A program made the translations under genes and the position numbers. A model generated the notes under the pieces. The model was given only the letters and a program-made list of their open reading frames with translations, was not told the origin of the DNA and searched no databases. Of a stretch of DNA of 64,000 nucleotides, positions 2,572-25,497 are shown one piece after another. Positions within the stretch are counted from its first letter, which is position 1. Every line of letters starts with the position of its first letter. This stretch comes from Macrostomum lignano. Lineage: Eukaryota. Location: the NCBI GenBank assembly GCA_002269645.1, contig NIVC01000178.1:1-64000 (forward strand). The letters run 5' to 3'.

Positions 2572-2966
2572 TCAGGGTACACACAGCCCCTGCCTATAAC
2601 TAACACAATAAGGTCCCAGTGTACAGTAGGTCAGTGCTGATGGACGCTTGACCAAGGAGTAATCTGGTGGCTAACGGTTTCCTTCCAGGGTGATAGCGGC
2701 CTTGCAACTCTTTGCCTGTGTTTAGCAGGAAGTCCCAGCATTTTCTTCTTTTTCGGCCAATGGCTCTTAGTCAACGTGAAGCAACTAGTCGTATTCACAT
2801 GTTGTATATTTTTAAGGTCAATATTTACGATGAAAAAGTGATATTCGGTTGCAATTTATTGCACTTTTAATTTTTCAATATTTAAATTCTACAAGTCGAA
2901 CTGGGATAACATTCTTACTGCTTATCAATCTTTTCGTGCGCTTCATCAAAGTTTCATGCTCAGGAG

Positions 2967-5900
2967 TCACTTATTGTACAGCACTCCGTCCAGCCACAGC
3001 CCCAGTGCCTCGACGTCGCAGTCATCGGCGCTCATGTCGAACCAGTTCGTCGCCGGCCCGGACTCCCCGCCGTCCAGTCGCTGATTCGCCAGCGCCCGGT
3101 AGCGAGCTCTCGACCGGCTGTCCACCTGCGAGTGAATAAAGATCGATACTGTATGTCTCACTCACACACAGTAGTGAGGCAGAGCTGTCTCACTCACACA
3201 GCAGTGAGGTACAGCTGTCTCACTCACACAGCAGTGAGGCAAAGCTACTCAAAACTCACACCTGCTCACTCAGTCTCACCTGTCCAACCTGAACTACCAG
3301 CAGGCGGCGTCTGAACGAGTTCGCAGCGAGGAAGGCTTGGAACTCGCACTGCAGCTCGGCCTCGTCTCTGAGCCAGCTGAGCAGGCCGTTGCTGAGCAGC
3401 AGCACGAACTGGCGAGTTCGCTTCATCAGGAAGCTGTTGATGCGGCTGGCTGGCGAGGCGCCCTCGAAGTTGTCAGGCCAGCGAGCAGCCAGGGCCGCGT
3501 CATTGGTGCCGAGCCGAACGCCTTGGAGGCGACGAACGATGAGCTCGACGACGGTGTTCGAGCTCGAATCTGGGTCGGCTCGGGACTCGGAGTCAGAGGC
3601 GGACTCAGGAGCGGACAGGATGAAGACCTCCGGCACTTTGTCCGAGTGGAACGGCGGCCAGTCCCGAATCGTGCTCAGGATGGTGCGGCTTCCTTTATAT
3701 TGGTTATGTGATTATAGATTATATGGGTAATGGTGGAAATTCCGAGCTCATCGTTTTGAAGCCGATTTCAGAACAGTGCCGCAATAATTTGTGTACTTAC
3801 TTATAAAATCTATTGTCTGCTCAACGTCCACAATTAATGGCTGCCCCTCGCCTGGAAGGTCTAATAGCTCTTCAGGCTCCGATGCGGTCCCGACGGTAAT
3901 ATCAAGGCGGTCAGCTACCGCGGGCGTGGCCGCCGCTGAAGTCTCTGGCGGAACAGACGAGTCAAACACGAGAACGGCGGCCGGATCTCGGTTCCGAATG
4001 CGCTCGATGAGTCGGTATTCCCAGTCAACGGACTTGTATTCGATGTCGCTCCCTGCGAGGATTCTCTGCAGAGTGTGGAACGCCTCCACGTCCTCAGGTC
4101 CGAGCTGTCTCTGGCGCTGAAGCGACACTCTGCGCGAGCTCAGGCGCAGAAACACGATGTCCTTGAACGGATTCCGACCTAAGCTGTCGAGATCTCGAAT
4201 CACCTGACACAGAGCCAGGTACTGGGTGTCGAGAAACCTCTCGGACAAAGCCACCACCACCTTGCCGCTGAACTTGGCTCCCTCAGCCGGACAGTCAAAG
4301 TAGGTGAGCGGACAGGAGCACAGGTCCGAGTAGAGGAAGCTCTCCGGAACGCACAGCTCGAGCTCGTCTCCGCCCGAGGCGCTGCGCACGCAGTTCAGCA
4401 CGTCGACCAGACAGTCCTGGTCTCTGTCCGACGCCCACAGCATCGCGTCGTACGGCAGCGAGTCCCGAGATGTCTGCTGCTGCAGTCGCCGACTGCTCTG
4501 GTACTTGAGGAGGATGAGGACTCGAACCACGGCCAGCAGTCGGTGTCGACGGCGGACAGCGAGCACCGCGAAACCGAGCAGCGCGAGACCGAATAATGAG
4601 GACAGAATGATCAGGACGATCTGCCTTCGCTGCTGTGCTGCCGAGTCCGCTATAAGCTCGCACACCCTGACGAGTCCGCCCTCATCGCTCACTGGATAGT
4701 CGCGAGATCCATTGCTTAAAAGAATTTTTTGGCAATCAAGTCGCCAGGCATCATTCCATCTGTTCAATTCGCAGGCTTCAATAATTGCCGGATCCACTTG
4801 GCAACGCATACTTTCGAAATCTGGGACAACTTGCGTTGTGCGCGCCACACTAATTAGAGATTTGTGAAGACTTGTCCACATTTCGTTACACTGACAGTGC
4901 CACGGATTGCTGCTGATCTTGAGTTCGTTTAAATTTGGAAGACAGCTAGAATTTAACAAATAGGGGTCAATCCAAGTTAGGTTGTTTCTCAATAGACTTA
5001 GCCGAATCAGATCTGAATTCGGTGAGCAGAAAGCTTTTGCCGGTACTTTTTCAAGCCTGTTGTCGTCCAAGTATAGAAACTTTATCGAAGTTTTATCTAC
5101 GAACGCATTCTCTTCGATGTAGCGAATGTTGCTATTGTTGAAAAACAAAACTACTAAGGCATCGCGGAGTTTTGGTGTTTCCCATTTCAGTGTGGAATTT
5201 GTTATTCTGTGGAAATAGTCGGACTCCCTGATTCCGGAAAAGTACATGTACTTTACAGGGATGCGCAGCAGTATGCTGACCATGTTTACATCAATATTGG
5301 TACAGTTGAGGTCGGACAACTCCCACTTGGCCGTGTGGTAGCAGCTGCAGTCGGGTACGCAAGTCTCCCAACACTCAAACGTGCTGTTAGTCAGGCCTGT
5401 TATGGGGATTGGTTCATTTGCGTACGACGCATACTGAGATTGTGGGGGTTGTTCGCAGTATTTTTTCGGTAATTTCTGTTCATAGTCGCCACTGAAGGCA
5501 CATAAGAACTCGCGGTACGATGCACCACTTAGTTTTCTAGTTGAGTTAGCACCGTCCTTCAAGAAGAATAGGCATGACGTAATTTCCAATTCGTGCTTAG
5601 GGATCGCTGGATAGTGGTAGTTAGTCCTTTCCAAGTCGGTCTCTTCCTCTGTTATGTAAGCGTAGACGTGATAGCAGTTGCAGACCGTTTTAACCTTTTG
5701 CCCGCTTATTAACAAGACAACACGAGAGCTTAAGGTTGGACGCTCCGACATGTTGAAGCTGTATGCATACATATTTTCTAAGCTATTGTTCCTTAGATCT
5801 ATTGTCTCCAAGGCTGGACGATTGTTGAAAGCGTTGTAGGAAATCGAGCTGATTGAATTGTTGGTCAGATTGATCCACCTAAGCCTTTCCGACTGGGGAA

Positions 5901-7858
5901 TGGAACTGAGCTCGATATTTGCCAGGCCACCATTTCGAATGCTCAGAGTCTCCAGGCGGCTCAAGCACTTTAAATGAATGTAGGGCAGTTGGTTGTCGTC
6001 GAGGTTAAGCGCCAGCAGGCTCTTTGACAGCAGCGAATAGCTGAATGCGTCCGAATTGATGCTCACAATAAAATTATTCTGCAGGTACAGCTCGGCCAGT
6101 GCCACCTAGATGTGACGAGTTGGGTTTTAAACTTGCTGGGTATCTTTTTTTACTAGAACAATTGTCGCGGCGTCATTTAAAGGTATCCGAGAAGATAGAA
6201 ACAGCTAGTAGAATTTAGAACAATGTCCGTTTAAAGACATTGTGGGTTGTCAACAGGTTTTATTATAAAACCCCAATACGAGGCTATCAAGAGAACTAGC
6301 GGTAAGCCCGTCTGACTCTCGCGCAACGACCCCTGGTTCGATTCCGCGCGCGGCCTCATACATTTGGGGCTTGTGTGCACGAAAAATGGTTGGGGGGGGG
6401 GGGTTTGTGCACTTCACACCCTGTGTGAGCGAGTGCATGAGTGAGTGCCTGCGTACAGTATTGGAGCGCTTGTGGAGTCAGTGGAATGAACAGAATGGCC
6501 TCAGCGTTGGTTGTGGGACAATGTCGCCGAAGACGTGCCTACAGCCATCCTGCGAATGAAAATATGAATAATATTTTTTCAATGCACCTTACCCCGTGCC
6601 AAGGTTGAATTTCGCCAATTTGTTTGATTCGATTGTAAGAAAGGTTCAGCACTTTCAGAGTCTGCCTGGATCCTCTGAACCAATAGCAGTGTCTGGTAGA
6701 GTTTGCCTTGTCTTCCTCGCGTATAGGAGGGTACCAGCACAGCCAGCTGTGATACAGCCTGCGTATTTTGTTGTGACTAAGGTCAATTGCATTTAAATTG
6801 CCAAACATGCTGATAGAAAAAGGGATCTCGGTCAGCTCATTGTATTGCAAGTTCAAGTAACTGAGAGCTACGTCGAACGGAATGTCGGAGGGAGAAAAGC
6901 CACTGCCCAGGCTGATGGTTCGGTAGCCGAATAGCAGCGAAAAGCTGATGTTGAATGAGTCCATCATGTCGTACAGATTGATTACCAAGTTCAGTTTGCC
7001 GGAGTCCTGCCTCATCTTACGCAGTCGTTTAATAGCCTCTGCTACTTGAGGATTCTCAGTGACTGGCTGCGGACCAACTCGTTGCAGATATTCATCTAGA
7101 GCCGTCAGCGCTTTCGACAAAGCGTCATCGGCAAACGTTCTCACGCTGCAGTTGCGCAGGGTCAAGCTATCGATTGACCGAAGGGCCAGTAGGTCAGTCA
7201 TCGATACCCACGTGATCGGCGACTCAACGATGCTTACACTACGAATGTACTGGCATTTGTGTAGAACATAGGCGGGCAAGTACCACATACTGCTCCGTCT
7301 GATGTGCAGGTAAGTCAGCCAACAATCGGACGCGTTGAAATCAGTCGGGTAGGTGACATTCACGGTGTAGTAGCCACCAACACCCGGATGTTGTGGCACA
7401 CCGAACTGTGCTATCTCCATGCCTTCAGTGACGCTGACATTCTCAGCTCTCAACTGCATCATTCTAATATTGAGACTGTTGACCCGACAATCGTTCAGTG
7501 AAATCTCCGACGGCGGATAAAAGTTTATCTGCTGGTCATCGTCATAATGAGCTCGAGTCATCTCGTGCATGTTCACTGAGACGCAGTTGCTGCAACCGGA
7601 GCAGCTGATGTTTAGGTGAGCAATCACTTTTGTAGGCAGGTTGGAGCAGCTGATGCTGCTATTTGCTGCCGTTAATCCTTTTTTAACGATCTCGCACAAG
7701 AAGTCGTATTCCGAAGAAACCGTATGACATCGACAGTCGTACGTGCGGCTGTAGTCGTGAAGAAAATCGACATAGCTCGGCAAAGAAGATTCACCGTGCA
7801 AACAGCAGCTGCTGAGAAGCAGCAGAGGCAGGGCTAGAGACACAAGATAGCGAGGCAT
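2967..7858 (-). CDS. Toll-like receptor: signal peptide, two LRR blocks with cysteine clusters, TM helix, TIR-like domain and second TIR-like domain; ~1380 aa
   Basis: Model complement(join(2967..3125,3280..3692,3801..6105,6593..7858)), 4143 nt, in frame. Donors GTAAGG, GTAAGT, GTGAGA and acceptors CTAG, TAAAG, CGCAG have matching phases. Signal MPRYLVSLALPLLLLSSCC; LRRs such as LSYLNLQYNELTEIP and LKVLNLSYNRIKQI; internal CNC and CVPDCSC clusters; NPWHCQC cap; TM IVLIILSSLFGLALLGFAVLAV; TIR box1-like YDAMLWAS. Confidence 0.85.
3149..3245. repeat. 30-bp tandem repeat (~3 copies) in TLR intron 3
   Basis: CTGTCTCACTCACACAGCAGTGAGG(C/T)A(G/C)AG repeated. Confidence 0.85.
6280..6358 (+). pseudogene. 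Degenerate tRNA-like sequence or tRNA-derived SINE head in TLR intron 1
   Basis: GAGGCT...GGCCTC acceptor-stem-like pairing, A-box-like TAGCGGTAAG and B-box GGTTCGATTCC. The D, anticodon and T stems pair poorly, so it is not called a functional tRNA. Confidence 0.5.
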
Positions 7859-9835: not shown

Positions 9836-10218
9836 GCACCTTTGCAAGAGAATAAGATCTCATTAACACCTTATTATTTGGCACCCTGAATTTAGATCGG
9901 TAAGTTTAAAAAAGTAGCTAAGTAACTTTATAACTTCATAACTTATAGTTTTGGCACAAAATTATTAAAATATTCAACCGACAGGTAAACAGGTCAATTT
10001 GGTCAAAAAGGTAATATATTTAAACTTCAATACGAGCTATACTCGTACTTCTACAGATCAAATTAACTAAACATTATTGCAGGAAGAATATTTTTCAAAA
10101 AACAAATACATTACAGGTAATACATTATAGAATAAAAACTTTACGCGGAATACCAGTATTAGTTAGACAAAGCTCTTGAAAAAGATGTCCCTGCTACTGT
10201 GAGTAGTAAGTTATATTC

Positions 10219-13200
10219 CTAGCGAAACTCCGGCTTCAGAGTCCACATCCCGCTGGGCCGATCGAAGTCGCACATCTGTCGCAGCAGAGCTCGAAGCAGG
10301 TGGCCCTCGTCTGGTCGCAAAATCTCGCCAACTACGTCGCTACTCATACTACTTGAAGTAGAAAAGCTGAAATGCCTAGCAATCTCGGAGCTGTCCCTGC
10401 GGCAGTCCTGCACCAGCGTGTGAAACACTCGAATGCTGCTGGCCAGATCCACGGCGCGCCGGTTCAGACCGCCCGCCTGGCCGAGGCCAGCCGACTGTTG
10501 CTGCTGACGGCGGAGCCGGAGGTCGATGAGTAGGAACAGGTCGTCAGATGAGTAGCGAACTCGGCCAGTTGACAGCAGGGCGGCACCGGAGAAGTGGCTC
10601 TCGACTGAGTTGGGGCAGCGGCGGGTGGAACTACGAGCTAAGTATGTAGAGATCTCCAAATACGGTACAAAGTGAACTACTATAAGTAGTAACATAAAAA
10701 TGCGAAAACTTAATTTTAGAATCTAAAAATATCAAGTGATCATACTCCATTTTTAGAAGACCACGAAACAACGAGTGATCATCTTATGCAACATTTCTAA
10801 AAATAGAATTGACGCGCAAAACCTATATAGTTTATTCTATGCAATTTTCGAGAGGTCAAAATTCCAAAACGCAAATGAGTCACCTTCCCAAAATAACCTG
10901 TTTACCCCAAAAGTTTACTATAAATACAAGCCAAAATCCGAGTCAAAATCTCAGACTCGGACCTGCCTCCAAAGATGTTGAAGCTTGCTGGAACAGCTAA
11001 GCGAGGCTACATCTCTGAGGAAATAAATACCGTTCGGTAAGCCTTTGTTCGAGCCTTTGTTATTTGGATTACTGAGAGCGATTTTATTGCCGGCCGTTAT
11101 TGATCAGTTTATTCAACTGAGTTCATTGAATTTGAGGCCTCCCATTTTCCTAAGGGATTGGATGGGATCTGCGGACCGATTCCGATACCCTTAGAGGATT
11201 ATCGAGTTGATTGATTTTGGTTATCCTAGATTAACCGATAGGAGCACACCACTCCGATTCCGTTATTTCTAGAAGAAGACGCCTTTCTTGGAGGACCTCG
11301 TTATTATCACAGAAGTTGATCTTGTTATTAGGGCGCATTGTTGATATTGATTATTGAACCTAAGGCCTATATTGGTTTGCATTCGAGAAATACTGCGACG
11401 TCGCCAGACTTGATTGTTACGCTCTCACTTTCGGCCGATTCTAGACTTCAAGAAGATTCCTCCGGAGAAGAAGATTTAAAGAAACGAGCTCGGAGAACCT
11501 GCCCAACACAGAAGAGGAGCCCGCCACAGTAAGTGAACACCTTATTCTGTTCCCAGGCTCAAGTGTCTGGAAGTGGGAGTTTTCTGGAGACTGATCACCT
11601 CCCGAATCAACTCTTCAAGTATTTTATTGTGCGTGTAAGACAATTTTGCGGCTGGAAGCCACATCAGAAGTGTCATAAAATATCCCTAAAAGCAACACCG
11701 GGAGTGTCATAAAATATCCCCAAAAGCAACACCGGGAGTGTCATAAAATATCCCTAAAGGTGACACCGGGAGTGTCATAAAATATCCCCAAAAGCAACAC
11801 CGGGAGTGTCATAAAATATCCCTAAAGGTGACACCGGGAGTGTCATAAAATATCCCAAAAGCAACACCGGGAGTGTCATAAAATATCCCTAAAAGCAACA
11901 CCGGGAGTGTCATAAAATATCCCCAAAAGCAACACCGGGAGTGTCATAAAATATCCCTAAAAGCAACACCGGAAGTGTCATAAAATATCCCTAAAAGCAA
12001 CACCGGGAGTGTCATAAAATATCCCTAAAAGCAACACCGGGAGTGTCATAAAATATCCCCAAAAGCAACACCGGGAGTGTCATAAAATATCCCTAAAGGT
12101 GACACCGGGAGTGTCATAAAATATCCCCAAAAGCAACACCGGGAGTGTCATAAAATATCCCTAAAGGTGACACCGGGAGTGTCATAAAATATCCCCAAAA
12201 GCAACACCGGGAGTGTCATAAAATATCCCTAAAAGCAACACCGGGAGTGTCATAAAATATCCCCAAAAGCAACACCGGGAGTGTCATAAAATATCCCTAA
12301 AAGCAACACCGGAAGTGTCATAAAATATCCCTAAAAGCAACACCGGGAGTGTCATAAAATATCCCTAAAAGCAACACCGGGAGTGTCATAAAATATCCCT
12401 AAAAGCAACACCGGGAGTGTCATAAAATATCCCCAAAATCAACACCGGAAATTACGTTAAATGTTGCTTCAGACAACACCAAACATACAGTATTTGGTTG
12501 TCACTTGATAGCAACACCGGAAGTACCATTGGTTGTCACTTAAAGCAACACCGGAAGTACTATTTAGTTATCACTTAAAGCAACACCGGAAGTACTATTT
12601 GGTTGTCACTTGAAGCAACACCGGAAGTACCATTGGTTATCACTTAAAGCAACACCGGAAGTACTATTTAGTTATCACTTAAAGCAACACCGGAAGTACT
12701 ATTTGGTTGTCACTTGAAGCAACACCGGAAGTACTATTTGGTTATCACTTGAAGTAACACCGGAAGTACTATTTGGTTATCACTTAAAGCAACACCGGAA
12801 GTACTATTTAGTTATCACTTAAAGCAACACCGGAAGTACTATTTGGTTATCACTTAAAGCAACACCGGAAGTACTATTTGGTTGTCACTTGAAGCAACAC
12901 CGGAAGTACTATTTGGTTATCACTTAAAGCAATACTGGAAGTACTATTTGGTTATCACTTAAAGCAACACCGGAAGTACTATTTGGTTATTACTTAAAGC
13001 AACACTGGAAGTACTATTTAGTTATCACTTAAAGCAACACCGGAAGTACTATTTGGTTGTCACTTGAAGCAACACCGGAAGTACTATTTGGTTGTCACTT
13101 GAAGCAACACCGGAAGTACTATTTGGTTGTCACTTAAAGCAACACTGGAAGTACTATTTGGTTATTACTTAAAGCAACACTGGAAGTACTATTTAGTTAT

Positions 13201-16200
13201 CACTTAAAGCAACACCGGAAGTACTATTTGGTTGTCACTTGAAGCAACACCGGAAGTACTATTTGGTTGTCACTTGAAGCAACACCGGAAGTACTATTTA
13301 GTTATCACTTAAAGCAACACCGGAAGTACTATTTGGTTATTACTTAAAGCAACACTGGAAGTACTATTTAGTTATCACTTAAAGCAACACCGGAAGTACT
13401 ATTTGGTTGTCACTTGAAGCAACACCGGAAGTACTATTTGGTTGTCACTTGAAGCAACACCGGAAGTACTATTTGGTTGTCACTTGAAGCAACACCGGAA
13501 GTACTATTTGGTTGTCACTTGAAGCAACACCGGAAGTACTATTTGGTTATCACTTAAAGCAACACTGGAAGTACTATTTAGTTATCACTTAAAGCAACAC
13601 CGGAAGTACTATTTGGTTATCACTTAAAGCAACACTGGAAGTACTATTTGGTTATCACTTAAAGCAACACCGGAAGTAAAATTGGTTATCACTTAAAGGA
13701 ACACCGGAAATACTATTTGAATATCACTTGAAGCAACACCGGAAGTACTATTTGGTTGTCACTTGAGGTAACACACCGGAAGTGTCTATAACATCAAGCA
13801 ACATTTTTACCTTGGCCCTGAGCTGTTGAATCATCCAGCCGACACCAGAGCCAGCAGCGGCGCACCCGACCAAACTGCTTGACCGGCCCAGCGGCAGCGG
13901 CAGCAGCAGCAGAGGCAGCCAGTCGATCTCGCAGCGCTGCAACCGCCGCAGTCGCAGTCTCACTGGCCTGCCATTCGACCAGATCCACATCCGCTGGTCC
14001 GGGAGCTTCGATCACCTCCTGCAATACGGCGTCTTGCACGCCGCAACGAATCAACGCCCTCTCCAGTTTATTATTTGCACCGCTGGCTATTATACTACTG
14101 CCGCTAGACGGACCGGCAGTAGTAGATGCAGCCTTTGATTCTGTCTGCAACTTTGGTATCTTTGCTATTTTCGATTTCAATTTCTTTGCTTTGCCATCGA
14201 GAGCCGCCGGCGGCTTCCGCTTGGCCGGTGAGGCATCCAGACGGGCTTTGCGAAGTACTCGACGAACTTCAGCGTCAATTTGAGGATTTGAGCGTTCCGC
14301 TGCCTCAAGCCGGTGCTGACTGGCTCGCGGCACCAGGGCCGACACCAGGGGGTCCGCAGAGTCCGCTGCATCTCTGGAGGTCGACGGCCCGGCGCCGGTT
14401 TTGTCTGGTTAATTGAGAAGGGAATTATGGCTTTGATTCATACCTGGAGCATAATGAAATCCCAACTATTCTTCCCAATGGGATCAAGATTTACCTGGAT
14501 GATTATGAAATCCCAACGATTCTTCCCAATGAGATCAAGATTTACCTGGATCAAATTATGAAATCCCAAAGATTCTTCCCAATGAGATCAAGATTTACCT
14601 GTATCAAATTATGAAATCCCAAAGATTCTTCCCAATGGGATCAAGATTTACCTGGATCAAATTATGAAATCCCAACAATTCTTCCCAATGAGATCAAGAT
14701 TTACCTGAATAATTATGAAATCCCAACAATTCTTCCCAATGAGATCAAGATTTACCTGAATAATTATGAAATCCCAACAATTCTTCCCAATGAGATCAAG
14801 ATTTACCTGAATAATTATGAAATCCCAACAATTCTTCCCAATGAGATCAAGATTTACCTGAATAATTATGAAATCCCAACAATTCTTCCCAATGAGATCA
14901 AGATTTACCTGGATGAATATGAAATTCCAAAATTCTCTCCAATGGGATCAAGATTTACCTGGATCAAATTATGAAATCCCAAAATTCTCTCCAATGGGAT
15001 AAAGATTTACCTGGATCAAAATATGAAATCCCAAATATTCTTCCCAATAGGATAAAAATTTACCTGGATCAAAATATGAAATCCCAACTATTCTTCCCAA
15101 TAGGATAAAAATTTACCTGGATCAAAATATGAAATCCCAACTATTCTTCCCAATAGGATAAAAATTTACCTGGATAAAATTATGAAATCCAAAAATCTTT
15201 GCCAATAGGATCAAGATTTACCTGGATCGAAATATGAAATCCCAAAAGTTATTTGACTTTGAACAAGTATTAAATCTGATAAATTAAAGTGCTTTGGATT
15301 ACTTAAAATCTTGAACAGTGGTCTCACCCGAACCCCGCTGTCCATCTCCATAGTCGAACGCGGCCTGCTTTACCACAAACTCGATTCGATGGCCGTCGAC
15401 TTCCTGGCGCTTGGCGCCGCGAGCGCGTTTCCTGTCACCGCCGCTCTTGTCTTTGCTTTTCTTCTTCTTTTTCTTCTGCTTCTTCTCTTTACGACGGGAT
15501 TTCTCTTGAGCCGGCTCCCTGGTCTCGGCCGGCTCGGCCTCGGCGCCTGACGGGGCGCTAAATTCGCGCGCCACTTTGGCGCTTAACTTGCGCGCCAATT
15601 CGCGCAATTCTGCGCGTCTGCTGTCGGTCAACTGGGCCGCTGCGACCGGCGCTGCTGGGGGTGGTGAGATGAAGATTAAGTAATAAATATCATTTTCCAG
15701 AAAACTGTAAGGTGCAGAATGCAATTTAGCTAGAATTAACTTCAGGATCCAGCTAAACTTCAGGATCCAGCTAAACTTCGGGATCCAAATAGACTTCAGG
15801 ATCCAACTAAACTTCAAGATCCAAATAGACTTTAGGATCCAGCTAAACTTAAGGATCCAACTAAAAAACTTTAGGGTCAAACTAAAAAACTTTAGGGTCA
15901 AACTAAAAAACTTTAGGGTCAAACTAAAAAAACTTTAGGATCCAACTAAAAAACTTTAGGGTGCAAACTAAAAAACTTTAGGCTGCAAACTAAAAAAATT
16001 TAGGGTCCAAACTAAAAAAACTTTAGGGTCCAACTAACAAACTTTAGGGTGCAAACTAAAAAATTTTAGGGTCCAAACTAAACAACTTTAGGGTCCAACT
16101 AAGAAACTTTAGGGTGCAAACTAAAAAAACCTCTAACATTCGAGCTCGTAACTACATTAAACTTCATGGACCAAATAGGAAACTTCAGGACCAGACACGA

Positions 16201-16671
16201 AGTCAAGCAACAAAGTCCAACAAACAATCCAACACAAACCATCACTAGCGGACGACTCTTTCATCGCGTCCACATCGGTGGAGGCCGTCTCAGCTTCGCT
16301 GTCAGACGCTGCGCCCAGATCGACTCCGGCAGCTTCTTGACGCTGTCGCAAGGCGTCGAACCTGTTGGTGCTGGCCCCCGTGCCGGTGAACAGCGCCCTG
16401 GTCTCCGTGCCTTCGACGTCGTCTTTCAGAGCGAACAGCTCGTCTAAATTGTTGGCCTTGAAGAAGCGGCGCTGTCGAGGATCGCGAAGGATTCTGTTGG
16501 CCAGGAACTGCTTGAAGATCTGGCGATGGTAAACTTTCTCTTCGATTGTGCCGGAGGACAGCAGGCGGTAGATCACCACGTCTCTCTGCTGCCCGATGCG
16601 CCAGGCACGCTCTCGGGCCTGGTTGAGTGATTGATTAGATAGATAGATAGATAGATGATAGATAGATAGAC

Positions 16672-16711
<40 letters not shown>

Positions 16712-16726
16712 GATAGATAGATAGAC

Positions 16727-16766
<40 letters not shown>

Positions 16767-16805
16767 GATAGATAGATAGACAGATAGATAGATAGATAGA
16801 TAAAC

Positions 16806-16847
<42 letters not shown>

Positions 16848-17082
16848 CTAGATAGATAGATAGATAGATGATAGATAGATAGATAGATGATAGATAGATA
16901 GATATATATAGATGATAGATAGATAGATAGATAGATAGATAAATAGATAGATGGATGATAGATAGATAGATGATAGATAGATAGATAGATGATAGATAGA
17001 TAGATAGATAGATAAATAGATAGATGGATGATAGATAGATAGATGATAGATAGATAGATGATAGATAGATAGATAGATAGAT

Positions 17083-17137
<55 letters not shown>

Positions 17138-17580
17138 GATAGATAGATAGATAGATGATAGATAGATAGATAGATAGATAAATAGATAGATGGATGATAG
17201 ATAGATAGATGATAGATACATAGATAGATAGATAAATAGATAGATGGATGATAGATAGATAGATGATAGATAGATAGATGATAGATACATAGATAGATAG
17301 ATAAATAGATAGATGGATGATAGATAGATAGATGATAGATAGATAGATAGATAGATAAATAGATAGATGGATGATAGATAGATAGATGATAGATAGATAG
17401 ATAGATAGATAAATAGATAGATGGATGATAGATAGATAGATGATAGATAGATAGATAGATACTGTAGATGATAGATGATAGATAGATAGATAGATAGATA
17501 AATAGATAGATGGATGATAGATAGATAGATAGATAAATAGATAGATGGATGATAGATAGATGATAGATACATAGATAGAG

Positions 17581-17612
<32 letters not shown>

Positions 17613-20600
17613 TATTAATAAACGGATTGATTAAAGTTTCTCCCCATCAATCAAACCTGCAAATCCGTGCACGGATTCCAGTCGGGATCGAATATGATGA
17701 CCCGATTAGCCCCGGTCAAGTTGACTCCAATCCCGCCAACTCGCGAGGTCAGCAGGAACACAAACGTGCCAGGATCCGTATTGAACCTGTGCACCAGGGT
17801 CTGCCGGCTGCGTACGGCTGTGCCGCCGTCCATCCGCATGTAGGGATAGCCGCGCTTCTTCACGAACGCCTCCAGCACCCCCAGCATCCGGCGGCTCTGG
17901 CTGAACAGCAGCACTTTGTGACCATCCGAGCGCCAGGCCTTCAGCAGAGCGTCAACAACCAGCATCTTGCCGGAGCGCTTGTAGTAGCCGAATGTCAGAG
18001 ACTCGCGCGACGGCAGGCCGAACTTCTGCGGCGGCCCAGTTGACAGGTCCGGATGGTTGCAGATCTTGCGGAGGGTGGACAGGCCTGGGAATACCTGTGG
18101 GATTGGGGTGGTGGCGGGTTGTAAGCTATAGGACTGATTATTCATTTCCCTACCAAACCGTTTAAATGTTCTACCATTGTCTACCCACGTGTCTACCTAC
18201 TTAGTACTTGGCTGCCTAAACATCTACCTACCTGTCTAAAAATCTATCTACCTGTCTATCAAAATCTACCTGCCTAACTACCAATATATCAGTCTAATTT
18301 AATCTACCTGTCTACCCAAATCTACTGTCTACCCAAATCTACCCGTCTACCCTAATCTACTCTGTCAACCTTGATCTACCTGTCTACCCAAATCTACTGT
18401 CTACCCTAATCTACCCGTCTACCCTAATCTACTCTGTCAACCTTGATCTACCTATCTACCCAAATCTACTGTCTACCCTAATCTACCCGTCTACCCTAAT
18501 CTACCTGTCAACTGATCTACCTGTCTACCCTAATCTACCTGTCTACCCTAATCTACCTGTCTACCCTAATCTACCTGTCTACCCTAATCTACCTGTCTAC
18601 CCTAATCTACCTGTCTACCCTAATCTACCTGTCTACCCTAATCTACCTGTCTACCCTAATCTACCTGTCTACCCTAATCTACCTGTCTACCCTAATCTAC
18701 CTGTCTACCCTAATCTACCTGTCTACCCTAATCTATCTGTCTACTCAAACCCACCTGTCTACTCAAACCCACCTGCAACCCGAATCTACCTACCCACCTA
18801 AATCTACCTGTCTACCTAAATCTACCTGCTCACAAATCTACATATCGGCATACCAATTTATCTACCATTCTAGCGGTCTACCAATCCGCCTACACTACCT
18901 ACCTACAAATCTACCTATCAAGCTCTGTTCAGTAATCAACCGATCTGCTAATCTACCAAATAAACCTTACCATATAGCGACCCTCCAGAATCTGCCGGCA
19001 CTCCCTAGACGCCAGGTACTCCTTGTACACATCGCGTTGATAGTCAGACAGACGACAGAATAGCACCTGTTCGCTTTTGCCCGGCAATTGCAGGCGCACG
19101 TCCTCTTTCATTCGGCGCAATAGATAAGGATTGATGGTGTCCCGCAGGCTGCAGGCGCATCTGGTTTTGTATCAAGAAATAATTACCAGTGAATGAACAA
19201 ATTATCACTCCATTTGAACTATTCCATGCACTGCTATTTAGTTCTATTACTGTTAGTAGTAAATCTAGGAAAATTACTACGGGTCTACTGTCCAGCGGTC
19301 TAGAGCATTTATCTGTCAGGTGTAGACCTCTTAACCCCTAATTAGAGATCCCATCATCCAGGTATTAATCCTTAATTAAAGATCCCATCATCCAGGTACT
19401 AATCCCTAATTATAGATCCGATCATTAATCCCTAATTATAGATCCGATCATCCAGGTATTAATCATTAATTAGAGATCCCATCATCCAGGTATTAATCCA
19501 TAATTAGAGATCCCATCATCCAGCCATTAATCCATAATTAGAGATCCCATCATTCAGCCATTAATCCATAATTAGAGATCCCATCATCCAGGTATTAATC
19601 CATAATTAGAGATCCCATCATCCAGGTATTAATCCCTAATTAGAGATCCCATCACACAGCCATTAATCCCTAATTAGAGATCCGGTCATCCAGGTATTAA
19701 TCATTAATTAGAGATCCCATCATCCGGGTATTAATCATTAATTAAAGATCCCATCATCAAGGTATTAATCCCTAATTAGAGATCTTATCACACAGGTATT
19801 AATCCCTAATTAGAGATTCCATCACACAGGTATTAATCCCTAATTAAAGATCCCATCACACAGGTATTAATCCCTAATTAGAGATCCCATCATACAGACA
19901 TTAATCCCTAATTAGAGATCGCATCACCCAGTTAATAATAAAATATCTATAAATATACTATTAGCACATAAAGGCGGAACCAACCTGTAAGCCAATTCCA
20001 CCTGGAATTTGCTAGCGCTAGCGTAACCACCCTGTAGAATAGGGGTGGCCAGGTGCTGCATAAAGTCTTGCAGGTCGCCCAGTTTGCCAGGATAGACAAA
20101 GTCGAATAGAGACCAAAGTTCCTGGTATTGGGGGTTCGGTGTGATTGGTTTAAATTTGATATTTTTAACAGCTATTCAAATGCTTATTGATAAATTGTAT
20201 TTTTTAGCTTAAGTTGGTACTGTAAGTTGGTAAACAAATTGCAAAGTGTTAGGATATCACGAAGGCCATTAATTCAGCAGTATAAAACACACTTATTTTT
20301 AATAAGTAGTATATAACAGCCGCAATTAATCAGTAGTATACAACACACTCAATAATCAGTAGTATATAACACACACAAGCAATCAGTAGTATATAACACA
20401 CTCAATAATCAGTAGTATATAACACACAAGCAATCAGTAGTATATAACACACACAAGCAATCAGTAGTATATAACACACACAAGCAATCAGCAGTTTATA
20501 AAACACACAAGCAACAGTAGTATATAACACACTCAATAATCAGTAGTATATAACACACAAGCAATCAGTAGTATATAACACACACAAGCAATCAGCAGTA

Positions 20601-23600
20601 TATAAAACACTCAAGCAATCAGTAGTATATAACACACTCAAGCAATCAGTAGTATATAACACACTCAAGCAATCAGTAGTATATAACACACTCAAGCAAT
20701 CAGTAGTATATAACACACACAAGCAATCAGTAGTATATAACATACTCAAGCAATCAGTAGTATAAAACACTTTTAATTAATCAGTAGTATACAGCACAGT
20801 CAATTAATCAGTAGTATTAAAACACACTCAAGCAATCAGTAGTATAAAACACAATTAATCAGTAGTATACAGCACACTCAATTAATTAGTAAGTATATAA
20901 CACACCCAATTAATTAATCAGTAGTATTAAAACACACTCAAGCAATCAGTAGTATAAAACACAATTAATCAGTAAGTATATAACACACCCAATTAATTAA
21001 TCAGTAGTATTAAAACACACTCAAGCAATCAGTAGCATATATCAGTAGTTTAAGGTTAAAAAGTAGTATGTTCACCGCTCACCTTAAGATTATTTTGCAT
21101 CGGAGTACCGGATATAATTATCCTATGCGGCGTCGGGAACTGCTTGCAAGCGATAGTAACATCGCTAGTTGGATTCTTAATCCGATGGCCTTCGTCCAGG
21201 ATGACGTAATCCCATCTGTACTTTAACAGAATATCCCTATGCATAGTTAAGGTATTGTAGGTAGTCAGCAATATGCCGGGATGATTGGCAATGCTGTGCA
21301 CTAATTTAGCAGGTTTAGAGTAGCCGCTACCAGTAGAGTGCAGAATAGCCACCCGAAATCTCGGGTACCACTGTCGCAGCTCGCCAAGCCACTGCTGCAG
21401 CACGGTGCCCGGACAGGCGATTAGCACAGGGCCAAGACGAGGACCGCCTAGCCGGTTGTGACTGTAGGACAGGCCAGCCAATAGGGCAATCATTTGCACA
21501 GTTTTGCCCAGGCCCATCTGATCGCCCATAATACCGCCAACTCCCTGCAGTGATGTTGCATTGTGCTTGATTGTGTTTTCTTATACGAGTATGATATGAA
21601 TTTTTCAAAACAATCTATGGGTTTCTTATCCAGATCTTATAGACTTTTTATCCAGATCTATAGATTCCTCATCAAGATAGATATCTCATCAAGATCTAAA
21701 TATTCCTCATCAAAATCTATAGGTTCCTTATAATCAAGATCTATAGATTCCTCATCAAGATCTAAAGATTTCTCATCAAAATCTATAAATTCCTCATCAA
21801 GATCTAAAGATTTCTCATCAAAATCTATAAATTCATTATCAAGATCTATAGATTTCTCATCAAGATCTATAAATTCTTTATCAAGATCCATAGATTTCTC
21901 ATCAAGATATATAGATTTCTCATCAAGATCTATAGATTCCTCGTCGAGATCTTTAGATTTCTCTTAAAGATCTATAGATTTCTTATCAAGATCTGTAGAT
22001 TTCTTATCAAGATCTGTAGATTTCTTATCAAGATCCATAGATTCCCCATCAAGATCTATAGATTTCTCTTTAAGATCTAAAGATTCCTTATCAAGATCTA
22101 TAGATTTTTCATCAAGATTTATAGATTCCTCATCAAGATCTATAGATTTTTTATTAAGACCTATAGATTCCTTATCAAGATTGGTAGATTCCACGTCCGG
22201 TATACTAAAATGGTTTGTCTAGATCTGAGTACTAACAAATATCAATCATGTAAAGTACTCAAAACCCTCCAACCTGCCTGAGAGTGCAGCTCCCTCAGCC
22301 AGCGCACGGCCACTCGCTGATAAGGAAACAAAGACTGCCAGATTTTTCTGGGCAAAGCGAACGCCAAACCATCTGGCAGGCCTTCTAATTGCATCGGCAA
22401 ATCGTCGGATTCATCGTTAAAGTCATCGCCGCTGCCGCCGCCACCGTCCTCCAGACGAACCTGCCTGTCGATGAGTTCGCTGCGATTCAGACGGGCGATG
22501 CGCCTCTCGTAGGCCAGTAGGCTGGCGTCATCCAGCAGAGGACGGGCTCGCTGTTGCTGCTGCTGCTGATGCTGAGCCTCCTGATGAAGCTCCGAGGATG
22601 CCGCTGAAGAAGGCGACTCTGGAGGCGACTCCTCCACAAGGCGAACTGACTGTCTTCGACGTTGCTGGTGTTGCTTCTGCTGCTGTCGAGAGCGCTTTGT
22701 TGCAGGGACGCTTCGCGTGCTTGAATGGTCCACCTGATTAATTCAGATAGGCCATAAACATCTGAGAAAGATATCTGTTAGCTCTTGTTAGGATAGCTCG
22801 TACAAAGACTTGCATTACATCGAAACAAAGACTAGTTGCTTCTCTTAATAGACACGAATTGTGACAGGAAACAAAGTCTACAACTATGGTCCAGTATAAA
22901 CGCAGAGTCAGAAGCAGACAAAAATAAAGACTCCTCTACTTCTGTATCGGCTCTAATCAAAACCAGAGGAAAAACAAAGACTCCTCTACTTCTGTATCGG
23001 CTCTAATCAAAACCAGAGGAAAAACAAAGACTCCTCTACTTCTGTATCGGCTCTAATCAAAACCAGAGGAAAAACAAAGACTCCTCTACTTCTGTATCGG
23101 CTCTAATCAAAACCAGAGGAAAAACAAAGACTACTGCACTATTGACGCTGGTAATGAATAAGCAAGCCAATCTCAACAATGTAAACAAACCTCAACACAA
23201 ACTGCTGGCCGCTTCACAGCCACAGGCCTCTCAATTGAAGGCGCGGCAGCGGCCCTGCCAACTCCGGCGAATCCCATGTCGCAATCCGCATCCCCAGTTG
23301 CTGCAACCCGATTCGTCGTGCCAGCAGCCTCAGCTTCGGCAACAGCTTCCGCTTCTAAAGATGCAGCTTCGATTCGTTCCTTAGTAGCTCGACGCCTCGC
23401 CTCCAACGTTTGCAACTGGCGGACGCGAGCCTCGGCCGCCGCTTCCATCGAACGAATTCGACGCGTCTTGGCCGGATCGCAGCTTCCAGACTCGGCATCT
23501 CGCAGAGCCGCATCAAGTTGAGCCTCGCAGCTGGCCAGATCCCGACGAGCGCTATCGGCGTCGGATTCGATGCGAGCCAATTGAGCTCGAAGTCCGGCCA

Positions 23601-23807
23601 ATTCTGCTGCTCTTCGACGCTCAAGTTCGCCGCTGAGCTGGCGGACAACGGCGGAGTCGAGTTCGGCTCGGTCGTATTGGCGAACTCCGGCTAGGCTGCT
23701 CAGAGCGGCCTCGCTGGCTGCGCGAGGCGGCAGAGTCGGTGGCGGCGGTGGCGGCAGCATGCCAGACTCTCTACCATCTTCATCAGCCGCCAGCTCTCCT
23801 TCTTGCT

Positions 23808-23838
<31 letters not shown>

Positions 23839-23850
23839 AGGCTGCAGCAT
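10219..23850 (-). CDS. ERCC6: DNA excision repair protein ERCC-6 / CSB / Rad26 (Snf2-family ATPase), ~1353 aa
   Basis: Model complement(join(10219..10637,13811..14404,15328..15654,16240..16618,17657..18094,18971..19160,19985..20121,21083..21544,22278..22733,23191..23850)), 4062 nt, in frame. Motifs [98 protein letters not shown] and a CSB-type C-terminus LLRQMCDF...WTLKPEF. The exon 1, 2 and 9 donors are uncertain by a few codons. Confidence 0.93.
11669..12450. repeat. 34-bp minisatellite, ~23 copies (ERCC6 intron 9)
   Basis: Unit GAGTGTCATAAAATATCCCTAAAAGCAACACCGG. Confidence 0.95.
12510..13785. repeat. 35-bp minisatellite, ~36 copies (ERCC6 intron 9)
   Basis: Unit AAGTACTATTTGGTTGTCACTTGAAGCAACACCGG. 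Confidence 0.95.
14452..15245. repeat. 51-52-bp minisatellite, ~15 copies (ERCC6 intron 8)
   Basis: Unit AATTATGAAATCCCAACAATTCTTCCCAATGAGATCAAGATTTACCTGAAT. Confidence 0.92.
15735..16130. repeat. Adjacent 18-bp and 21-bp minisatellites (ERCC6 intron 7)
   Basis: AACTTCAGGATCCAGCTA followed by AACTAAAAAACTTTAGGGTCA units. Confidence 0.9.
16637..17612. repeat. (GATA)n microsatellite (ERCC6 intron 6)
   Basis: About 1 kb of imperfect GATA; source of the spurious YLSI-repeat ORF. Confidence 0.97.
18290..18800. repeat. 18-bp minisatellite (ERCC6 intron 5)
   Basis: Unit ATCTACCTGTCTACCCTA. Confidence 0.93.
19335..19915. repeat. 34-bp minisatellite (ERCC6 intron 4)
   Basis: Unit ATTAATCCCTAATTAGAGATCCCATCATCCAGGT. 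Confidence 0.92.
20300..21050. repeat. 27-bp minisatellite (ERCC6 intron 3)
   Basis: Unit AATCAGTAGTATATAACACACTCAAGC. Confidence 0.92.
21620..22190. repeat. 21-bp minisatellite (ERCC6 intron 2)
   Basis: Unit ATCAAGATCTATAGATTTCTC; source of the spurious DLDEKSI-repeat ORFs. Confidence 0.92.
22925..23130. repeat. 50-bp tandem repeat, ~3.5 copies (ERCC6 intron 1)
   Basis: AAAGACTCCTCTACTTCTGTATCGGCTCTAATCAAAACCAGAGGAAAAAC repeated exactly. Confidence 0.93.
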
Positions 23851-25497
23851 GTGGAATTAAGTTTATAGACCTGCGAGTTCTTTCTCGAGGTGAGGCTGCA
23901 GCATGTGGAATTAAATTTATAGACCTGCGAGTTCTTTCTCGAGGTGAGGCTGCAGCATGTGGAATTAAATTTATAGACCTGCGAGTTCTTTCTCGAGGTG
24001 AGGCTGCAGCATGTGGAATTAAATTTATAGACCTGCGAGTTCTTTCTCGAGGTGAGGCTGCAGCATGTGGAATTAAATTTATAGACCTGCGAGTTCTTTC
24101 TCGAGGTGAGGCTGCAGCATGTGGAATTAAGTTTATAGACCTGCGAGTTCTTTCTCGAGGTGAGGCTGCAGCATGTGGAATTAAGTTTATAGACCTGCGA
24201 GTTCTTTCTCGAGGTGAGGCTGCAGCATGTGGAATTAAGTTTATAGACCTGCGAGTTCTTTCTCGAGGTGAGGCTGCAGCATGTGGAATTAAGTTTATAG
24301 ACCTGCGAGTTCTTTCTCGAGGTGAGGCTGCAGCATGTGGAATTAAGTTTATAGACCTGCGAGTTCTTTCTCGAGGTGAGGCTGCAGCATGTGAAATTAA
24401 ATTTATAGACCTGCGAGTTCTTTCTCGAGGTGAGGCTGCAGCATGTGGAATTAAGTTTATAGACCTGCGAGTTCTTTCTCGAGGTGAGGCTGCAGCATGT
24501 GGAATTAAGTTTATAGACCTGCGAGTTCTTTCTCGAGGTGAGGCTGCAGCATGTGGAATTAAGTTTATAGACCTGCGAGTTCTTTCTCGAGGTGAGGCTG
24601 CAGCATGTGGAATTAAGTTTATAGACCTGCGAGTTCTTTCTCGAGGTGAGGCTGCAGCATGTGGAATTAAGTTTATAGACCTGCGAGTTCTTTCTCGAGG
24701 TGAGGCTGCAGCATGTGGAATTAAGTTTATAGACCTGCGAGTTCTTTCTCGAGGTGAGGCTGCAGCATGTGGAATTAAGTTTATAGACCTGCGAGTTCTT
24801 TCTCGAGGTGAGGCTGCAGCATGTGGAATTAAGTTTATAGACCTGCGAGTTCTTTCTCGAGGTGAGGCTGCAGCATGTGGAATTAAATTTATAGACCTGC
24901 GAGTTCTTTCTCGAGGTGAGGCTGCAGCATGTGGAATTAAGTTTATAGACCTGCGAGTTCTTTCTCGAGGTGAGGCTGCAGCATGTGGAATTAAGTTTAT
25001 AGACCTGCGAGTTCTTTCTCGAGGTGAGGCTGCAGCATGTGGAATTAAGTTTATAGACCTGCGAGTTCTTTCTCGAGGTGAGGCTGCAGCATGTGGAATT
25101 AAGTTTATAGACCTGCGAGTTCTTTCTCGAGGTGAGGCTGCAGCATGTGGAATTAAGTTTATAGACCTGCGAGTTCTTTCTCGAGGTGAGGCTGCAGCAT
25201 GTGGAATTAAGTTTATAGACCTGCGAGTTCTTTCTCGAGGTGAGGCTGCAGCATGTGGAATTAAGTTTATAGACCTGCGAGTTCTTTCTCGAGGTGAGGC
25301 TGCAGCATGTGGAATTAAGTTTATAGACCTGCGAGTTCTTTCTCGAGGTGGATGGAATCAATCGCAGGGGTTGAGACCTCTGAACCTTCTGCTGATGATG
25401 ATGAGGCTGCAGCATGTGGAATTAAGTTTATAGACCTGCGAGTTCTTTCTCGAGGTGGATGGAATCAATCGCAGGGGTTGAGACCTTTGAACCTTCT
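23837..25497. repeat. 54-bp array (~28 copies) containing the ERCC6 start codon, plus an adjacent 107-bp duplication
   Basis: Unit GAGGCTGCAGCATGTGGAATTAAGTTTATAGACCTGCGAGTTCTTTCTCGAGGT, nearly invariant, 23837-25350. Positions 25351 and 25458 start duplicate flanks GATGGAATCAATCGCAGGGGTTGAGACC. Confidence 0.97.

Follow-up and report, generated by a model that had tools for sequence, protein, structure and literature searches.

A predicted Toll-like receptor of the flatworm Macrostomum lignano with a cryptic TIR domain and a conserved second cytoplasmic module

Here we describe a Toll-like receptor (TLR) gene from the flatworm Macrostomum lignano; the presence of a Toll family in this species, which belongs to a phylum thought to lack TLRs, is the chief interest of the analysis. 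The gene (Mlig004240) was read on the minus strand of contig NIVC01000178.1, within a window of 64,000 nucleotides (nt) that constitutes the whole stretch of DNA analysed. Its coding region, defined by open reading frames (ORFs) and a spliced model, extends from 7858 to 2967 and comprises four exons encoding 1380 amino acids (aa). The protein is predicted to be a multiple-cysteine-cluster Toll, with a signal peptide, leucine-rich repeats (LRRs), two cysteine clusters and one transmembrane (TM) helix. Its cytoplasmic tail contains two separate modules. Domain 1 (D1) is, to judge from profile comparisons, a genuine TIR domain that is too divergent for Pfam. Domain 2 (D2) is a real, constrained module, of alpha/beta type according to a low-confidence model, and its TIR nature is marginal. 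We consider it probable that the protein is a strongly derived Toll in which the divergent TIR signals and D2 acts as a tethered, non-catalytic docking or regulatory module. A preliminary description of the locus had proposed two tandem TIR-like domains, one of them possibly enzymatic; its observations are partly confirmed and its interpretation is partly supported by the results below.

The ectodomain is of Toll type. Exon 1 (7858..6593, aa 1–422) encodes the signal peptide (aa 1–22, 7858..7793), the N-terminal ectodomain and the first LRRs. Exon 2 (6105..3801, aa 423–1190 plus one base) encodes further LRRs, both cysteine clusters, the TM helix, D1 and most of the linker that follows. Pfam recognizes the repeats with high significance (LRR_8, E 1.2e-30; LRR_4, E 8e-16). 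Direct reading places an internal cysteine cluster at C564–C690 (5682..5302; CNC...C...C, then CWETCVPDCSCYHTAKWELSDLNC) and a membrane-proximal LRRCT at aa 822–880 (4908..4732; NPWHCQC...C...C...C). Multiple-cysteine-cluster (mcc, or P-type) Tolls are characterized by an internal LRRCT-LRRNT cysteine cluster, and the combination of the C564–C690 cluster with the LRRCT N822–C880 reproduces this arrangement; the motif of the internal cluster, CxxxC(P/V)xxCxCYH..W......C, is common to P0005 and insect Tolls. The TM helix, read by eye, spans 23 residues (aa 917–939, QIVLIILSSLFGLALLGFAVLAV; 4623..4555) and is followed by RRRHR. The top matches outside M. lignano are insect Toll-6/7/8-like proteins, and the BLASTP alignment with one of them, a Toll-6/7-like protein, is colinear, running from the LRRs through the cysteine cluster and the TM helix into the first half of the TIR (E 7.8e-21). 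A second short hydrophobic stretch, LLAVVRVLILL (aa 944–954, 4512–4544), lies directly past the RRRHR stop-transfer motif and may form a juxtamembrane amphipathic or membrane-associated segment.

The receptor gene is intact and transcribed. All three introns of the spliced model are of GT-AG type with compatible phases. Intron 1 (phase 0) lies directly after QPWHG, intron 2 (3693..3800, phase 1) falls inside the linker, and intron 3 (3126..3279, 154 nt, phase 0) contains three copies of a 30-bp repeat (3154–3246). Exon 3 occupies 3692..3280 and exon 4 occupies 3125..2967, ending in a TGA stop codon (2969..2967); an AATAAA poly(A) signal is found on the same strand at 2855..2860, 107 nt 3' of the stop. 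Two GenBank proteins match the model at 100%: PAA88685.1 (BOX15_Mlig004240g1) over aa 534–1380 and PAA61380.1 over aa 1–914. Exon 2 has in addition a near-identical match in UniRef, the M. lignano entry A0A1I8HAC1, titled 'TIR domain-containing protein'. The Mlig_3_7 GenBank annotation derives from a genome-guided RNA-seq transcriptome combined with TransDecoder ORFs (PMC5730564), and the exon 2-3-4 junctions present in PAA88685.1 are thus transcript-derived. The layout that had been deduced from the letters alone, with D1 in exon 2 and D2 in exons 3 and 4, agrees with the GT-AG introns and with the GenBank protein, and the peptide strings quoted in that account all lie on the minus strand where they had been placed.

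D1 covers aa 974–1135 (4452..3967). It was compared with a TIR profile built from 33 arthropod Toll TIRs, which was used for both hidden Markov model (HMM) and hhalign tests. The Toll-TIR HMM returned p values of 4.6e-5 for D1 of the window copy and 5.7e-7 for D1 of a paralogue, and none of 3000 shuffled D1 sequences matched the real score. With hhalign, D1 aligned to the arthropod Toll TIRs over 91 columns, from betaA to betaD, at 88% probability (E 3.5e-6); across the original and broader TIR profiles the probability was 88–89% (E 2–3.5e-6). When the secondary-structure blocks of D1 were permuted, the real score was matched in 0 of 140 permutations. Box 3 is kept, as DWEY. AlphaFold2, given only three to four input sequences, arranged the elements of D1 in TIR order at a predicted local distance difference test score (pLDDT) of 51, and about 14 of the 50 top Foldseek matches of D1 were TIR domains, none of them below E 0.1 and none significant singly. 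Standard family models did not detect the domain: a Pfam scan of the window protein gave no TIR (PF01582 or PF13676) at E ≤ 10, and phmmer and profile searches of D1 against PDB sequences gave no TIR, only chance matches with E of at least 0.2. For the isolated D1 of the paralogue, the Pfam TIR was the sole family listed, at a sub-threshold E of 0.099 (12.9 bits versus a cut-off of 21.3).

Between D1 and D2 lies the acidic linker that the preliminary description had noted, 65 residues long with a net charge of −8 (aa 1136–1200, 3966..3664, interrupted by intron 2). D2 is encoded by two exons, its first part (aa 1201–1328, 3663..3280) by exon 3 and its second part (aa 1329–1380, 3125..2970) by exon 4. 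Recognizable motifs are DWPPFHS, VFILS, an acidic Ser-rich insert, RWPDNFEG, TRQFVLLLS..SW..DEAEL and RRLLVVQV in exon 3, and YRALANQRL, NWFDM and LGLWLDGVLY in exon 4. A search for paralogues with the two-module tail, of the kind suggested earlier, brought up among the M. lignano proteins the 1357-aa protein PAA67356.1 (Mlig015932; P0035/P0039 in our sequence set), which contains D1 and D2 within one ORF and is 28% identical to the window protein across both tail modules (E 8.7e-14). Identity with P0035 is 30.8% in D1, 16.9% in the linker and 32.5% in D2, so that between deep paralogues D2 is as conserved as the TIR. The gene structures correspond as well. Intron 1 of the paralogue locus (L001) matches that of the window gene in position and phase (SPWFE|VNL versus QPWHG), and the phase-1 intron precedes EWPP by 12 residues in the paralogue and DWPP by 10 residues in the window gene. 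L001 has an extra phase-0 intron in the TIR after betaA (L001:9140-9231; VFFLADQQ|DESTL) that is absent from the window gene, and lacks the window gene's intron inside D2 (intron 3). Because the paralogue conserves D2 behind the same phase-1 intron, D2 is a part of the receptor that is bounded by exons and maintained by selection. An exhaustive phmmer search with the tail against 1.84 billion representative proteins found only M. lignano proteins, and D2 was seen only in a small Macrostomum gene family.

The relationship of D2 to TIR domains is much harder to establish. Searches of D2 against Pfam (E ≤ 10), PADLOC and PDB sequences gave no TIR or other match, the PDB hits being chance matches with E of at least 0.2. 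The Toll-TIR HMM gave p of about 5e-4 for D2 of the window copy (2 of 3000 shuffles), with the signal confined to betaC-alphaC-betaD, and p 0.07 for D2 of the paralogue (390 of 3000 shuffles, p 0.13). In hhalign comparisons with the Toll TIRs, P was 0.004 in local and 0.01 in global mode, and 0.004–0.024 across profiles. The global alignment is colinear with the TIR, setting VFILS against box 1, RQFVLLLS..W against betaC/alphaC, RRLLVV against betaD, NWF against betaE and LGLW..LY against box 3 (FW..LrY), the last of these not significant alone. Block permutations of D2 scored as well as the real order in 11 of 140 and 9 of 140 cases (6–8%). When D2 was divided into thirds, the N- and C-terminal thirds had no significant in-register match and only the middle third carried signal; aligned alone, this third falls out of register, betaD onto betaC, which indicates that the TIR signal of D2 is largely a generic one of basic residues plus a hydrophobic strand. 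Adding the TIRs of TLR2, TLR6 and TLR15 to the profile lowered the D2 scores. The TIR boxes are not matched either, VFILSAP standing for (F/Y)DAFISY, RWPDNFEG for RDxxPG, and LW/QW for FW. Direct reading confirms that RDxxPG is found in the BB loop of neither domain. Neither BLASTP nor hhalign detects any similarity between D1 and D2 (profile E 0.63), and we thus have no evidence of an internal TIR duplication. Of the two TIR-like domains originally proposed, D1 is upheld beyond chance by HMM, hhalign and permutation tests, and D2 is not.

Further copies and database models bear on the history of the gene. A second genomic copy, L002:4794-10043 (NIVC01002037.1), corresponds to window positions 7858..2967 at 99.8% identity, and carries a nonsense codon, R915* (CGA to TGA), just before the TM helix. 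The two copies do not differ in the 914 codons upstream; downstream of codon 915 there are six differences, three synonymous and three not. With only seven differences, one of them a nonsense codon, dN/dS between the window copy and L002 is uninformative. The product of L002 would be a secreted ectodomain only, unless the copy is a young pseudogene. In L002 the 30-bp repeat of intron 3 is expanded to an array (L002:9373-9884), and the intron measures 512 nt versus 154 nt in the window. The older predicted models are unreliable. In the UniRef models P0001, which is 99% identical to the window protein in the tail, and P0046, two coding segments are spliced out, and both models seem to 'splice out' the segment with the L002 stop. 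The paralogue model P0033 is a mosaic with respect to the window protein, 37–54% identical in the ectodomain but, within aa 916–1135, 88% identical in the TM/juxtamembrane region and 98% in the TIR. Such a pattern points to gene conversion, or to an exchange of exons, affecting the cytoplasmic part of Toll paralogues.

The reading that we favour as probable is that of a strongly derived Toll. Ligand would bring about dimerization of the ectodomains, so that the D1 TIRs meet and, like those of other Tolls, assemble through homotypic TIR contacts. The acidic linker would be a flexible tether for D2, itself a non-catalytic docking or regulatory module that would serve either as an adaptor-like surface built into the receptor or as a cap that auto-inhibits D1. 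As to ancestry, it is a serious possibility, somewhat short of even, that D2 descends from a degenerate second TIR, given its beta-alpha alternation and the fact that TIR profiles match it weakly and colinearly, with betaC-alphaC-betaD at the centre of the match; the remaining probability falls to an unrelated, lineage-specific alpha/beta domain. Several observations weigh against this reading of a signalling TIR with a maintained, folded companion. The BB loop of D1 lacks RD..G, and in helix C of D1, Y1051 and C1055 stand in place of the W and E of Toll TIRs; given the loss of the BB-loop RD..G and the helix-C Glu, D1 may signal in a non-canonical way. Recent copies diverge faster in D2 than in D1 (P0034 D2 is 91% and P0033 D1 is 98% identical), and the tails of the window copy and P0001 differ at four positions, every one of them in D2. 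The AlphaFold2 model of D2, based on an alignment of four sequences, reached a pLDDT of only 39. Its low-confidence order of elements is beta(26–30), alpha, alpha, beta(100–104), alpha, beta(135–140), alpha, with three clear strands. Foldseek offered a P-loop/AAA+ NTPase fold for this model, with E of at least 0.29 and no TIR among the top matches; we rejected this assignment on account of the pLDDT and because no Walker A motif is visible by eye. The structure searches that had been recommended for each half of the tail gave TIR-enriched matches for D1 and no TIR for D2.

A related but more doubtful alternative sees in D2 a true second TIR without enzymatic activity; the protein would then be a 'twin-TIR' Toll that arose by internal TIR duplication or by fusion with a TIR-only gene. 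The colinearity of the global hhalign alignment with all TIR elements and the HMM score of the window copy both point in this direction, as do the size and beta-alpha alternation of D2 and the existence of twin-TIR Tolls in bivalves. The permutation test sets D2 (p of about 0.06–0.08) apart from D1, however, the D2 of the paralogue alone reaches only p 0.07–0.13, and the outer thirds without in-register matches, the lack of D1–D2 similarity and the fall in score with a broader profile all tell against a bona fide TIR. Far less probable still is the enzymatic version of this idea, in which D2 is a bona fide second TIR acting as an NAD+ hydrolase (NADase) of the SARM1 or plant type, paired with D1 as a scaffold TIR. 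It could draw on W1297 and the acidic residues that follow it, on the weak profile match (P 0.004) and on the loss of the helix-C Glu from D1, where its place is taken by C1055 in the window gene and by Leu in P0035. Three glutamates of D2 come into question: E1301 (3363..3361), E1303 (3357..3355) and E1307 (3345..3343). The EF.A motif that the preliminary description had equated with the Glu of TIR helix C contains E1307, and this assignment proved to be mistaken; HMMER and hhalign both place the conserved TIR Glu opposite E1303 (in AEL), and the W+4 spacing from W1297 leads to E1301. In P0035/P0039 the residues aligned to E1301, E1303 and E1307 are N, R and N, the nearest acidic residues being E at W+3 and D at W+4, and the rest of D2 is conserved. 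Since the candidate Glu is not conserved in the paralogue, D2 would be non-catalytic, and the proposal of an enzymatic TIR, which rested on the mis-assigned residue, loses its footing. Membership of D2 in the TIR family is itself unproven, with no Pfam or PADLOC TIR match. The same Glu occurs in the TIRs of human TLR2, TLR6 and TLR15 (WCxYEL), and is therefore not diagnostic of an enzyme; to our knowledge, these receptors are not established NADases. NADase activity of D2 is thus unsupported by the residues at hand and highly improbable.

Two other explanations would deny D2, or the whole tail, a role in a working receptor. It is scarcely credible that exons 3 and 4 are an artefact of the gene model, being a separate downstream gene or non-coding, with the receptor ending at the stop at 3748. 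Some older predicted models lend themselves to this idea: P0033 reads into intron 2 and then stops, and in P0034 a copy of D2 is combined with unrelated sequence. Polycistronic, trans-spliced precursors moreover occur in M. lignano (PMC5730564). Yet P0034 is visibly a chimera, including an antisense translation of the window locus, and the frame of the window gene is open across two GT-AG introns with matching phases. The RNA-seq-derived PAA88685.1 is identical to the spliced model and spans exons 2-3-4, so that the end at 3748, which had been raised as an objection to the two-module tail, is not where transcripts stop. In the independent paralogue PAA67356.1 a single ORF likewise covers both modules and the intron is shared, and the AATAAA signal lies past the stop of exon 4. 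A slightly better, if still unlikely, case can be made for a decaying tail, in which the gene is a relic of a Toll en route to loss in flatworms and neither D1 nor D2 functions. The missing canonical BB-loop and helix-C residues of D1 would fit decay, as would R915* in L002 with all six other coding differences downstream of it. Against decay, all 1380 codons of the window copy are intact, and two paralogue lineages with 28% tail identity keep open frames and domain order, with about 31–32% identity in D1 and D2 versus 17% in the linker; the genes are also present in a transcriptome-based annotation.

Comparison with known systems places the protein closest to insect Tolls of the Toll-6/7/8 (mcc) type, with which it shares a signal peptide, two LRR blocks split by an LRRCT-LRRNT cysteine cluster, a membrane-proximal LRRCT, a single TM helix and a TIR. 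Identity is only 21–23%, however, the N-terminal 320 aa have no clear counterpart in insect Tolls, and the flatworm TIR does not reach the Pfam threshold and has neither RDW..G nor the Glu of WxxxE. The tail beyond the TIR is of low complexity in insect Tolls, whereas in the flatworm protein it is a conserved module. The architecture is unusual for a TLR, as had been recognized at the outset, the sole reported precedent being the twin-TIR Tolls known from Hyriopsis cumingii (HcToll-2), two Pacific oyster loci and Loripes, a structure described as bivalve-only. These are likewise LRR-TM receptors with two tandem cytoplasmic modules, but both of their TIRs are recognizable, whereas in the flatworm protein neither module reaches the Pfam threshold and only D1 is demonstrably a TIR; the exhaustive phmmer search with the tail revealed no sequence relationship to them. 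With the TIR NADases of SARM1, plant TNLs and bacteria, D2 may have the fold in common, and the window copy has a Trp and acidic residues at the start of a putative helix C; the Glu is not conserved in the D2 family, however, and similarity to TIR models is not significant. In Drosophila Toll, a C-terminal inhibitory region after the TIR modulates signalling; it is short and not a conserved globular domain. It offers a precedent by analogy, with no homology claimed, for regulatory sequence past a TIR.

The remainder of the window contains other genes and many tandem repeats. About 1 kb downstream of the 3' end of the Toll gene, a 23-bp minisatellite (TCGCTTGAAGGTTAGTCTGGGGA) occupies 1214–1945 with about 32 copies and 88% matches. 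A multi-exon gene for an SNF2-family helicase of the ERCC6/CSB type lies on the minus strand at about 10200–23900 (SNF2-rel_dom, E 2e-42, at 21056–21529; Helicase_C at 17651–18145), and the equivalent ORF of L002, 158 aa long, bears a WHD_Rad26_CSB annotation. The introns of the helicase gene contain very large minisatellites, at about 16.2–17.2 kb and 23.7–25.4 kb. A fibrinogen-related domain exon (32550–33131, minus strand; Fibrinogen_C, E 4e-34) adjoins an intronless ORF on the plus strand (33544–34656) with Phage_integrase and DUF3504 matches. Such an ORF is typical of a Crypton-like tyrosine-recombinase element, or of a domesticated copy of one. Exons for the ligand-binding domain of Cys-loop ligand-gated ion channels are found on the plus strand at 49244–49741 and 61168–61962 (Neur_chan_LBD, E 4e-25 and 2e-48) and probably represent two receptor-subunit genes. 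Long, strand-asymmetric minisatellite arrays at 40.7–41.4, 44.0–45.5, 51.2–53.1, 56.5–58.0 and 61.8–63.3 kb show extreme GC/AT skews and give rise to spurious ORFs of 400–600 aa in several frames.

TLRs have been reported as absent from Platyhelminthes, with zero listed for M. lignano (PMC8609888); a review likewise describes the phylum as lacking them (PMC7958881), and an early loss in the phylum has been inferred (PMC8609888, PMC7958881). The papers that we searched contain no mention of a Macrostomum Toll. The survey that arrived at zero used a TIR HMM search as its first step, and surveys of this design would report no TLRs because the flatworm TIR fails the Pfam TIR models. A broader scenario, which we offer tentatively, is that flatworms kept Tolls: a small functional family would persist in Macrostomum, with a TIR that has drifted below detection and a second, family-specific module that has been acquired, either a degenerate TIR adaptor or a new domain, and with wiring that differs from the MyD88-centred scheme. 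An intact, transcribed gene that has paralogues and encodes a Toll-type ectodomain, a TM helix and a statistically supported TIR would move the inferred loss of TLRs to after the split of Macrostomorpha, and it shows that censuses that begin with an HMM undercount fast-evolving receptors. Should a TIR origin of D2 be established, twin-TIR Tolls would cease to be peculiar to bivalves. As RNA interference and transgenesis are available in M. lignano, Toll function would be directly testable in a regenerating flatworm.

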